From the sequence record MW879344.1: a stretch of DNA of 64,000 nucleotides. One strand, given 5' to 3'. The notes under the pieces were generated by a model. The model saw only the letters and a list, made by a program, of their open reading frames with translations. It was not told where the DNA came from and made no database searches. Numbering within the stretch: the first letter of the stretch is position 1; every line of letters starts with the position of its first letter. The position numbers and the translations under genes were made by a program. Shown here piece after piece: positions 12,090 through 14,436 of this stretch.

Positions 12090-12800
12090 ATGAATAATAT
12101 AATGGAATATGTCAAATGTAGGGATGATATTTTCTATTTTATGGAAAAGTATTTAAATTTACAACTAAGAGGTTATCAAATTGACCAGTTAAACCAGTAC
12201 TTAGAGGTACAAACTGGTCAAACATTGAATATATTAGGTCATCGAGGGTGTGGAATTACATTAATAAACTGTGTATTCCTATTGTGGAAGGGATTATTCG
12301 GCACAAATGAAAAAGCTGTTGTTATTTCCCCTAGTCAACTAATGTCCAATTATAATTCTAAAAAAATCATGGAATTGTATGCCATATTTTGTTCTAATTG
12401 GAATAATAATCAAACTAGATATGAAATGTCATATCATAATAGTACTACATTGATAAATTTCACAAATAGCTGCATAATAAAATTCCTTAATTACACCAAT
12501 ATGCATCAAGTACGAGGAATATCATATAATTATATGTTTTTTGATGATGTATATTATTCTAAATTGGATATTGATGATATTAGTGTGGTTAAATCAAGTG
12601 CTAAGAAATATATCATAACTAATTCATGTTTACCCGAACATGTTCATCCATTAGAGGATACTGGCGTAATTATAAAGTATCCTTGGTACTGTGATTGTAA
12701 GCGAACTCAACAATGGCAATTATCGGAACTAAATAGTCTAGGAAAACCAGCATTTAACTTAATGTATGGTTGCACTAGAGGATTAGAAGATGGTAAATGA
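12090..12800 (+). CDS. degenerate paralog of the terminase large-subunit ATPase domain (probable pseudo-ATPase)
   Basis: Colinear with residues ~35-300 of the adjacent TerL; Walker A RQMGKT>RGCGIT, Walker B LYLDE>MFFDD; no nuclease domain. Confidence 0.85.
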
Positions 12801-14436
12801 CAATATTGATTATGATGATTACGAATATGATGATGAAGATTATTCCGTAACGAAAAAACCCAAAACACAAATAGAATACACTGATGAAATGATGGATGAA
12901 CTGGCTAGATGCCAAACTGATCCATTATACTTTATTGAAAACTTTGTTTACATACAAAGTGAGGGTGGGGAGCGTTTATTTAAACCCTTCCCATATCAAC
13001 GAGAGATGATTCAGAACTTCATCGATCACAAGAACAATATAATGCTTACTGCCCGTCAGATGGGGAAAACGACAGTAGTTGCTGCATATATTTTATGGTA
13101 TGCGATGTTTAATCCGACAAAAACAATTTTGTTGATGGGTAACGTACAAGCCGCCGCACAAGAAATCATGGAACGTATTAAGTTCGCATATGAAATGTGT
13201 CCTGACCATATTCGTGATGGTGTTACTAAGTATAATGAATTAACTATTAAGTTCGAAAATAAGTCTCGTATTATTGCACGTGCAACAACTCCAAAAGCTG
13301 CTCGTGGTTTAACTGTAGACCTATTATACCTTGACGAATTTGCATTCGTACAAGAAAGTTATCAATCAAACTTTTGGGCTGCTGTATCACCAACTTTAGC
13401 AGGTTCAGGTGGTAGTTGTATTATTTCCAGTACTCCAAATACAGAATATGATCAATTTGCATCAATTTGGTTTGAATCACAAATGCATACTGATTCAGAC
13501 GGTAATGAATATGAAGAAGATGGTCCAGGAATTAATGGATTCCGTGGAATTAAAGTTACATGGGATAAACACCCTAAACGTGATCAATCATGGGCAAGTA
13601 CTGAAGAATACAAATTAGGTTCTTCACGTTTTCGCCGTGAATATAACTGCGAATTCGTAACATATCAAGAAACATTAATTAATAGTGTTAAATTGACAGA
13701 AATAAAATCTAGAACTGTACGTGAACCAATTAAATTGACTGATGATGTTCGTTGGTTTAAAGAAATAGAGTATGGTTGTACATATGTCGTTGGTCTTGAC
13801 CCTGCTGGTGGTACTGGTGGTGACGATGCTGCTATTCAGGTATATGAATTACCGACTTTAAGACAAGTTGCTGAATGGAAGCATAATTTAACAATTATTC
13901 CAGACCAAGTTAAATTGATGCATAGACTTTTAAGTGAGATAGCTGCTAGAATGGAAGAAAAAGGTGCTCGAAATATTGAAGATCACTTATTCTGGTCAGT
14001 TGAAAACAACACAATCGGTGAAGCGGCGGTATTAGCTATCCAACATTTGGGTATAGAACGTTTCCCTGGTACATTAATTAATGAACCAAAGAGAACTAGA
14101 ACAGGTCGTGTGCGTAAGGGTATGACAACCACTAGAAGTACTAAAAAGACTGCATGTTTCCATATGCAGAAACTAATGGAAACCTTCAGAATGGAAGTAG
14201 CAAGTACTGAATTGCATAGACAGCTTAACGACTTCATTAAATCTGGTATGGATGATGGTCTTTATAAAGCTAAACTTGGTTGTAAAGATGACCTTGTTAG
14301 TGCTACATTATTAGTTGTTAGAATGATTGATATAGTAGCTAAATTTGAAGACAGAACGGCTCAAGTTATTAGTGAAACGCTAAATGATGGTGAAATATAC
14401 CAGCCTCTAACGATACTAGTAAGTTTCAATCGTTAA
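12790..14436 (+). CDS. terL: terminase large subunit (T4 gp17-like)
   Basis: YQ adenine motif, ARQMGKT, LYLDE, SSTP; nuclease [11 protein letters not shown] and KDDLV. Confidence 0.97.

Follow-up and report, generated by a model that had tools for sequence, protein, structure and literature searches.

The motors that package phage DNA are, in the textbook view, homomeric ring ATPases of the large terminase subunit (TerL) assisted by a small subunit (TerS). For the Rak2-like jumbo phages, the available part of the 2017 report by Buttimer describes in addition an incomplete gp17 domain (a 'truncated' large terminase), which it calls unusual and typical of these phages, and which the Sinorhizobium phages phiM12 and phiN3 are said there to share (PMC5259590); the available part of Kim 2020 describes close relatives of the phage considered here, with the same gene (PMC7760394). 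We analyzed this gene in a 64,000-nucleotide (nt) stretch of sequence record MW879344.1 (hereafter the window, meaning the whole stretch), where an open reading frame (ORF) of 236 amino acids (aa) at 12090..12800 on the plus strand, directly upstream of TerL, encodes a catalytically dead paralogue of the TerL ATPase domain without a nuclease domain; we named it psi-TerL for this report. The same gene appears in the two papers as CBB_274, GAP32_268, BF gp272, and the pEa_SNUABM 'terminase like protein' (PMC5259590, PMC7760394), and its existence in Rak2-like phages is already known. The available parts of both make no mention of the loss of catalytic residues, selection or evolutionary rate, function, truncated alleles, the homology of the 'hypothetical' proteins in the same slot of 121Q and RaK2, or a wider family, and a literature search found no treatment of catalytically dead TerL-ATPase paralogues as a class. 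What the present analysis adds is that the gene encodes a pseudo-enzyme, how it is selected, that it was truncated repeatedly, and that it belongs to a broad family linked to TerL.

The original prediction, made from the sequence alone, had aligned the 236-aa ORF with the ATPase half of TerL, and a BLASTP comparison with the window TerL returned the alignment in that same register (22% identity over 262 columns, E=8e-8), a similarity that is real but remote. PHROG 5989 ('terminase large subunit') matched residues 1-235 on profile positions 108-339 with E=1.8e-78, and a profile of 14 psi-TerL orthologues matched the ATPase domain of T4 gp17 (2O0H) with E=1.6e-14; against Pfam Terminase_6N, psi-TerL stayed under the gathering score (13.6 vs 22 bits, E=0.055). 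The AlphaFold monomer model is confident (pLDDT 89.8, pTM 0.89), and its top Foldseek matches were 2O0H, 2O0J, and 3EZK (TMq 0.78-0.79, E ~1e-10), with 2O0H as the best single structural match (TMq 0.79, E=1.1e-10). The model spans the whole protein and ends at residue 236, which is the end of the ATPase domain, bearing out the earlier statement that the nuclease domain is missing. With the motif register anchored on SRQLGKTT and MIYIDE of T4 gp17, the P-loop reads GHRGCGIT in psi-TerL (residues 50-57, 12237..12260, plus strand) against ARQMGKTT in the window TerL, placing Ile56 at the Walker-A Lys position and Arg52 at that of gp17 R162. Walker B reads YMFFDD (residues 148-153, 12531..12548, plus strand) against LLYLDE in the window TerL, with Asp152 kept and Asp153 at the position of the catalytic Glu, so that the loss of both catalytic residues, also part of the original prediction, holds in this register. 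An RG motif (Arg142-Gly143) lies 10-11 residues upstream of the Walker B site, and the strand equivalent to the C-motif, IITNS (residues 175-179, 12612..12626, plus strand), is the counterpart of IISST in TerL and IITTT in gp17. The trans-acting arginine finger in the TerL of Thermus phage P74-26 is an Arg that precedes the catalytic Glu by about 11 residues. The sole amino-acid difference between psi-TerL and its BF counterpart is at residue 53 (12246-12248), inside the degenerate P-loop (GHRGCGIT vs GHRECGIT). Judged by its model, psi-TerL is a pseudo-enzyme with a predicted complete T4-type TerL ATPase-domain fold, and since it has lost the Walker-A Lys and the catalytic Glu as well as the nuclease domain, it cannot carry out canonical translocation or DNA cutting.

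Comparing synteny in BF, GAP32, CBB, Yen9-04, XbC2, Kaldavass, 121Q, PBECO4, A4, JNE01, RaK2, K64-1, and metagenomic loci, which cover the genera Eneladusvirus, Mimasvirus, Asteriusvirus (121Q, PBECO4, A4, JNE01), and Alcyoneusvirus (RaK2, K64-1), we found the same gene order in all of them: exonuclease, a ~165-aa protein, the slot gene corresponding to psi-TerL, TerL, and a virion protein. The identity of psi-TerL with its counterparts is 99.6-100% for BF and pEa_SNUABM, against 40-41% for CBB and GAP32. Both the Walker-A Lys and the catalytic Glu are absent from all slot proteins compared (18/18, from the four genera and metagenomic lineages), and the catalytic death is therefore older than the split of the genera; among Rak2-type family members, the Lys is absent in 22/22 and the Glu in 21/22, with Ser, Asp, or Asn in its place. 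The slot proteins of Asteriusvirus and Alcyoneusvirus are classed by PHROGs as 'unknown function' and, searched alone, had no PDB matches; hhalign links them with the window family at 94.9% probability over 200 columns. GenBank names for the slot gene range from 'terminase DNA packaging enzyme large subunit' and 'putative terminase like protein' to 'hypothetical protein'.

The ratio of nonsynonymous to synonymous substitution rates (dN/dS) was estimated by NG86 with codon bootstraps, the deep pairs being synonymously saturated and indicative only. In the four unsaturated comparisons, full-length slot alleles had dN/dS of 0.16-0.23 (codon-bootstrap 95% range 0.08-0.34) and neighbor genes 0.03-0.06, and when neutral substitution was simulated at the observed divergences, the probability that the first 170 codons stay open was P <5e-5. 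Because of these two results we conclude that the slot gene is under purifying selection, with a constraint several-fold weaker than that on its neighbors; between the window and Yen9-04, identity is 46% for the slot protein, 93% for TerL, and 90% for the product of the 166-aa gene upstream. No signal of positive selection was found in the full-length alleles, with dN/dS <1.

Outside the Rak2-like phages, a paralogue-only profile searched against 1.84 billion cluster representatives gave 3,345 matches at E <=1e-3. Among the best 150 of these 3,345, 92 proteins of <=320 aa lie outside the Rak2 family, with the Lys absent in 60 of the 92 and the Glu also absent in 45 of the 60, whereas both residues are present in 28 of the 38 proteins longer than 470 aa. 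Since the Lys is missing from the query profile too, the ranking is biased to Lys-less proteins; despite this bias, the Lys-less matches are distinct 50%-identity clusters. Other Lys-less proteins also match PHROG 5989 (P0031, 2.5e-47; P0082, 4.7e-23; Xoosp13_242, 4.4e-28). When we sampled genomic context in ten non-Rak2 T4-like lineages, eight had a Lys-less paralogue in the TerL module, directly upstream of TerL in six (L025, Xoo-sp13, L032, L029, L039, and L041) and one gene away in L027 and L040, where the order is neck, gp15, paralogue, a ~190-aa protein, and TerL; in L030 and L042 it was not seen beside TerL. The intervening gene has a weak TerS match in L027 (phrog_735, E=6e-4) and only a weak anti-repressor match in L040. 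In L030 and L031 (5001-6819), the 274-aa Lys-less P0082 precedes a 327-aa protein without family matches and has no recognizable TerL adjacent, an arrangement that could be split or divergent. A tblastn search of cultured phages with the metagenomic Lys-less proteins returned mostly genuine TerLs, the sole new cultured member being from Xanthomonas phage Xoo-sp13. That protein, Xoosp13_242 (L036 2735-3430), is annotated as 'terminase small subunit', although it is a Lys-less, Glu-less TerL-ATPase paralogue; hhalign relates it to the window family at 97.7%.

The P-loop Arg (T4 R162) is present in every protein compared (22/22 of Rak2 type, 59/59 of the other Lys-less ones, and 28/28 TerLs), and the Lys is present in no paralogue; the Gly following that Arg remains in at least 95% of the family, the Walker-B Asp in 75-86%, and the RG Arg in 67-91%. 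An N-terminal E..C..D..YF...Y block and a C-terminal W...G...F..Y.C segment are conserved in the family as in TerL, and we take the conserved N- and C-terminal segments of psi-TerL to correspond to subdomain II of T4 gp17. The Lys position holds scattered hydrophobic or small residues and the Glu position N, D, S, or Q, and several positions conserved in TerL are relaxed in psi-TerL (profile columns 78-90, 106, 117, and 134). Such a pattern suits a protein whose shape and contact surfaces would still be those of a TerL ATPase domain, its own nucleotide chemistry having been abandoned. A tree built from 22 TerL ATPase domains and 26 paralogues placed none of the paralogues as sister to its cognate TerL; 18 paralogues including psi-TerL formed one cluster (support 96/78), and the window TerL grouped with other Rak2-like TerLs (support 100/99). 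The N-terminal motif of psi-TerL is nearer to that of T4 gp17 than to that of its own TerL. A recent tandem duplication of the adjacent TerL was ruled out, as paralogue and cognate TerL are never grouped together, and in this respect the original prediction, which spoke of a copy of the TerL motor domain, needs correction. By its sequence relationships, psi-TerL instead belongs to an old, separate paralogous lineage (PHROG 5989) accompanying TerL in Rak2-like and many T4-like phages, and a single origin of the paralogues would be compatible with the well-supported branches of the tree.

The frame of psi-TerL is intact, and its own Shine-Dalgarno sequence (SD) and overlap with the TerL start were found as first described. 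The SD, AAGGAAG (12079..12085, plus strand), has a core AGGA that ends 6 nt before the ATG and is identical throughout the Eneladusvirus, Mimasvirus, and metagenomic loci. The psi-TerL frame ends with TGA at 12798-12800, beyond the TerL ATG at 12790, giving an 11-nt overlap, and the SD of TerL, AGAGGA (12777..12782, plus strand), lies within the conserved C-terminal Thr-Arg-Gly (TRG) codons of psi-TerL; in most relatives, the junction between slot gene and TerL is likewise an 11-23 nt stop/start overlap or a 1-nt gap. Upstream, in the interval from the 166-aa gene's stop to the psi-TerL SD, there is a stem-loop with a perfect stem of 9 base pairs, AGTACTGCA-TCT-TGCAGTACT, followed by TTTT (12054..12074, plus strand). 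The locus alignment shows its stem preserved through compensatory changes in Yen9-04, mg16/17, 121Q, and RaK2 (four genera), and the hairpin is also present at the equivalent site of L013, L016, L017, and L020-L023; it may be a terminator or a 5' mRNA hairpin, marking the start of a psi-TerL-TerL unit. In CBB and mg14, a TATAA(AT) motif that overlaps the upstream stop codon resembles a T4-type late promoter. With a conserved hairpin, a strong SD, and a gene end within or at the TerL start in most lineages, co-expression with TerL is the simplest expectation.

Turning to the surroundings, the window region matches Erwinia phage pEa_SNUABM_49 at 100% identity and Serratia phage BF at 99.8%, both Rak2-like jumbo myoviruses of the genus Eneladusvirus with genomes of ~357 kilobases. 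In the genuine TerL (12790..14436, plus strand, 548 aa), Walker A is ARQMGKTT (K93) and Walker B is LLYLDE (E183), and the C-terminal part is a nuclease domain; this protein matches Pfam Terminase_6N (E=3.5e-15, 56.7 bits) and PHROG 36964 (E=2.3e-264), and aligns with residues 94-560 of T4 gp17 (E=8.8e-35). As this TerL is complete with its own ATPase domain, a split TerL, intein, or intron artefact was ruled out for the window. In some relatives, an interruption or split close to the P-loop affects TerL itself, downstream of the slot gene: in RaK2, JNE01, Ec-M-J, A4, L040, and L041 (L005 3270-4911; L010 3957-5294; L008 4650-7319; L011 3632-6292; L040 3508-5943; L041 3940-6741). The L040 TerL contains a LAGLIDADG, L041 has a 430-aa MTES_1575 gene between two TerL pieces, the Ec-M-J and A4 TerLs are annotated as two ORFs or as an N-terminally short ORF, and the ~887-aa TerLs of RaK2 and JNE01 are described as containing inteins in the available part of PMC5259590. 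The P-loop codons of TerL look like a hotspot for mobile elements.

The 166-aa protein upstream (11546..12046, plus strand; PHROG 15898), of unknown function, is the fixed upstream neighbor of psi-TerL in every Rak2-like phage. It is 53-57% identical across Rak2-like genera with dN/dS ~0.05, carries an invariant basic/aromatic block (KSxxSKKRFxPGWW), and its gene start overlaps the stop of the upstream exonuclease gene (ATGA). It had no family matches, no PDB matches, no TerS signal, and no similarity to a TerS-like protein, and its AlphaFold model, mostly beta, is unreliable (pLDDT 49). Its identification as TerS is unsupported on these results, with the model unusable for that purpose; that it is a member of the packaging module is possible. 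Downstream of TerL, a 351-aa ORF at 15988-17043 of the window sits where the annotation of relatives puts a single-strand DNA-binding protein (SSB), then a UvsX/RecA-like recombinase. The synteny of TerL, virion protein, SSB, and UvsX is annotated in Ec-M-J and partly common to Xoo-sp13.

We consider a non-catalytic partner of the terminase to be the most likely role of psi-TerL, and give this reading about an even chance of being correct. The grounds for it are results of this analysis: the fold and homology, the ancestral loss of both catalytic residues, the conserved slot, purifying selection on full-length alleles and their open frames, the coupling to TerL, the breadth of the family, its linkage to TerL across lineages and its separate, old origin, and the retained P-loop Arg, RG Arg, and Walker-B Asp. 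We infer its expression, its interaction with TerL, and its regulatory effect: psi-TerL would be made together with TerL, would bind TerL or the partners of TerL via its retained ATPase-domain surfaces, and would modulate the assembly or the ATPase/nuclease activity of the terminase. Packaging continues in T4 motors that have been doped with ATPase-dead gp17, but these engage DNA less often, pause more, and run more slowly (PMC8589836), which indicates that a dead subunit can join the motor and alter its behavior and that mixed assemblies are physically possible; equally possible as an alternative to ring entry, psi-TerL may bind free TerL or control initiation or cutting. A number of results count against such a partner. 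An inactive ring subunit is expected to slow packaging, so that incorporation into the ring is not obviously advantageous, and the virion proteome of these phages (a table from liquid chromatography with tandem mass spectrometry) lists neither terminase protein, both being only in the ORF lists, and is uninformative. The dN of the slot gene is 8-15 times that of the neighbor genes, the RG Arg is variable (Lys in P0004, Tyr in RaK2, Ser in Yen9-04), and long-branch attraction may have exaggerated how closely the paralogues cluster in the tree. The C-terminal third has also been lost via deletion and frameshift at least twice. Slot ORFs of only 171-185 aa are found in 5 of the 18 loci (Yen9-04 and L016 to L019), none of them overlapping TerL, and these truncated alleles are without everything from about the IITNS strand (12612..12626) onward. 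In the TerL tree, L016, L017, and L019 form one clade and the placement of Yen9-04 is not resolved; taxonomy sets Yen9-04 in Eneladusvirus together with the full-length BF and pEa49, which makes at least two independent truncations. Relics of the lost C-terminus ('..LNSLE..TRG') persist out of frame directly upstream of TerL, indicating an internal deletion plus frameshift, and since the relic coincides with the TerL SD AGAGGA, part of the C-terminal 'conservation' is a nucleotide-level constraint. Between the two members of the one closely related pair of truncated alleles there are 7 non-synonymous changes and 1 synonymous change (TerL 0:8), so recent constraint on truncated alleles is not demonstrable, the counts being compatible with none. 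On the other side, in L016/L017 (mg16/mg17), which have one shared frameshift layout, 171-176 codons are still open at 32% identity, and because these frames stayed open while diverging, the N-terminal ~170 residues appear to be the selected core.

The recurrent C-terminal loss with its relics and the 7:1 ratio also suit a decaying duplicate, in which psi-TerL would be an eroding, non-functional remnant of a TerL duplication kept only for the translation signals of TerL, as do the 41-47% identity of slot proteins where TerL is 87-93% identical, the coincidence of the conserved TRG codons with the TerL SD, and the Asteriusvirus and Alcyoneusvirus versions, too degenerate for PDB matches alone. 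We nevertheless regard decay as quite unlikely: dN/dS has upper bounds of <=0.34 in all four unsaturated comparisons, the frame is open in 18/18 loci despite up to ~80% protein divergence in an AT-rich genome (the simulated P holding even for 170 codons), the predicted fold is confident with its core and N-terminal motifs invariant, the same kind of gene is kept beside TerL in many unrelated T4-like lineages, and a spacer carrying an SD would not require 700 nt of open frame. The original prediction had held that psi-TerL is retained rather than drifting, and had named dN/dS near 1 or frequent disruption in relatives as the marks of decay; retention stands for the full-length alleles by their dN/dS and for the open frame, while disruption did occur in at least two lineages and does not allow the same to be said of the truncated ones. 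A substitute for TerS, with psi-TerL recognizing phage DNA or recruiting or activating TerL at packaging initiation, was also proposed there and seems to us unlikely. Its position directly upstream of TerL and its translational coupling are those of gene 16 to gene 17 in T4-type phages (RB14 layout), no TerS family was found for the cluster genes tested and no T4-type TerS in the window, and the depositors' label of the Xoo-sp13 member would agree with it. A long terminal repeat implies site-specific packaging initiation. Phage CBB is reported, in the available part of PMC5259590, to have such a repeat, which we count on the same side. Against this, psi-TerL has no TerS match in Pfam, PHROGs, or NCBIfam, and bears no relation in sequence or predicted fold to any TerS, its modelled fold being that of the TerL ATPase. 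In L027 and L040, moreover, the paralogue stands upstream of a separate 187-199-aa gene in the TerS position (with the weak TerS match in L027 only), so that both can coexist, which weakens the idea; the conserved 166-aa neighbor is an alternative TerS candidate, and fast-evolving TerS proteins are not known to tolerate the loss of a third of the protein. The remaining proposal, an immune decoy or evasion factor mimicking the TerL ATPase fold to sequester or blunt terminase sensors (Avs1-3, Upx), we judge to be very improbable, having found no positive evidence for it. The evolutionary rate is of the arms-race type, the psi-TerL model is similar in structure to the chain of the PhiV-1 terminase in the Avs3 complex (8DGC_E, TMq 0.74), and the TerL ATPase domain alone activates EcAvs2 and Upx, as T4 vs.8 triggers EcAvs2 (PMC13601566). 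However, target binding activates Avs sensors by oligomerization (PMC13601566), and by that logic a faithful mimic should set them off instead of blocking them; the contacts of EcAvs2 include the ATP bound by the terminase and the Mg shell of the active site, and SeAvs3 reads active-site features and the nuclease domain (PMC13601566), whereas psi-TerL, without Lys, Glu, and nuclease domain, should lack the features that the sensors read. The close and ancient linkage of the gene to TerL, together with the coupling of their translation, speaks for a role in packaging, and full-length alleles have dN/dS <1 without a positive-selection signal. No anti-Avs decoy family that binds a sensor without activating it is described in PMC13601566; at most, an accessory protein might escape detection by having lost its ATP site.

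Within the preferred reading of psi-TerL as a non-catalytic terminase partner, a stronger version, which we hold to be rather doubtful, would make it an obligatory non-catalytic third terminase component in a large, old T4-like branch that includes Rak2-like and XacN1-like jumbo phages, docking on TerL via its conserved surfaces and controlling motor firing or cutting, possibly through the P-loop Arg. If this were true, these phages would have hetero-oligomeric packaging machines, unlike every characterized phage terminase. A conserved dead paralogue next to TerL in many T4-like phages would in any case suggest an unrecognized accessory layer in packaging, and the inconsistent labels of such genes ('terminase large subunit', 'terminase small subunit', 'hypothetical') can mislead TerL phylogenies, packaging-strategy predictions, and screens for what triggers terminase-sensing defenses.

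Set against known systems, psi-TerL is closest to the ATPase domain of T4 gp17 (2O0H, 3CPE, 3EZK), whose fold its model shares (TMq 0.79), and with which it has in common the N-terminal block (KKCRDDIVYF in gp17), a YQ motif, the P-loop Arg-x-x-Gly, the RG motif, the Walker-B Asp, and the C-terminal segment; unlike gp17, it is without the Walker-A Lys, the catalytic Glu, the nuclease domain, and the N-terminal extension, and its evolution is about 10 times faster. T4 vs.8 (PHROG 1488; L038 8257-8913, minus strand) is, like psi-TerL, a stand-alone TerL-ATPase-like protein (219 aa) without a nuclease domain, but its Walker A (GGRQSGKS) and Walker B (IIDE) are intact and it is unlinked to gene 17; membership of psi-TerL in the vs.8 family was ruled out (hhalign probability 0.6%). 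The small terminase of T4 gp16 type has the same position and translational coupling to TerL and is unrelated in fold and sequence. Non-catalytic P-loop ATPase subunits such as the clamp-loader delta-prime keep the fold and Arg residues and have lost the residues of their own nucleotide site, beside active paralogues; the likeness to psi-TerL is an analogy, with no homology beyond the P-loop fold, and does not imply ring entry or Arg donation by psi-TerL. As a dead paralogue encoded beside its active relative, psi-TerL would be the natural counterpart of the artificial 'doped motor' experiments in T4.

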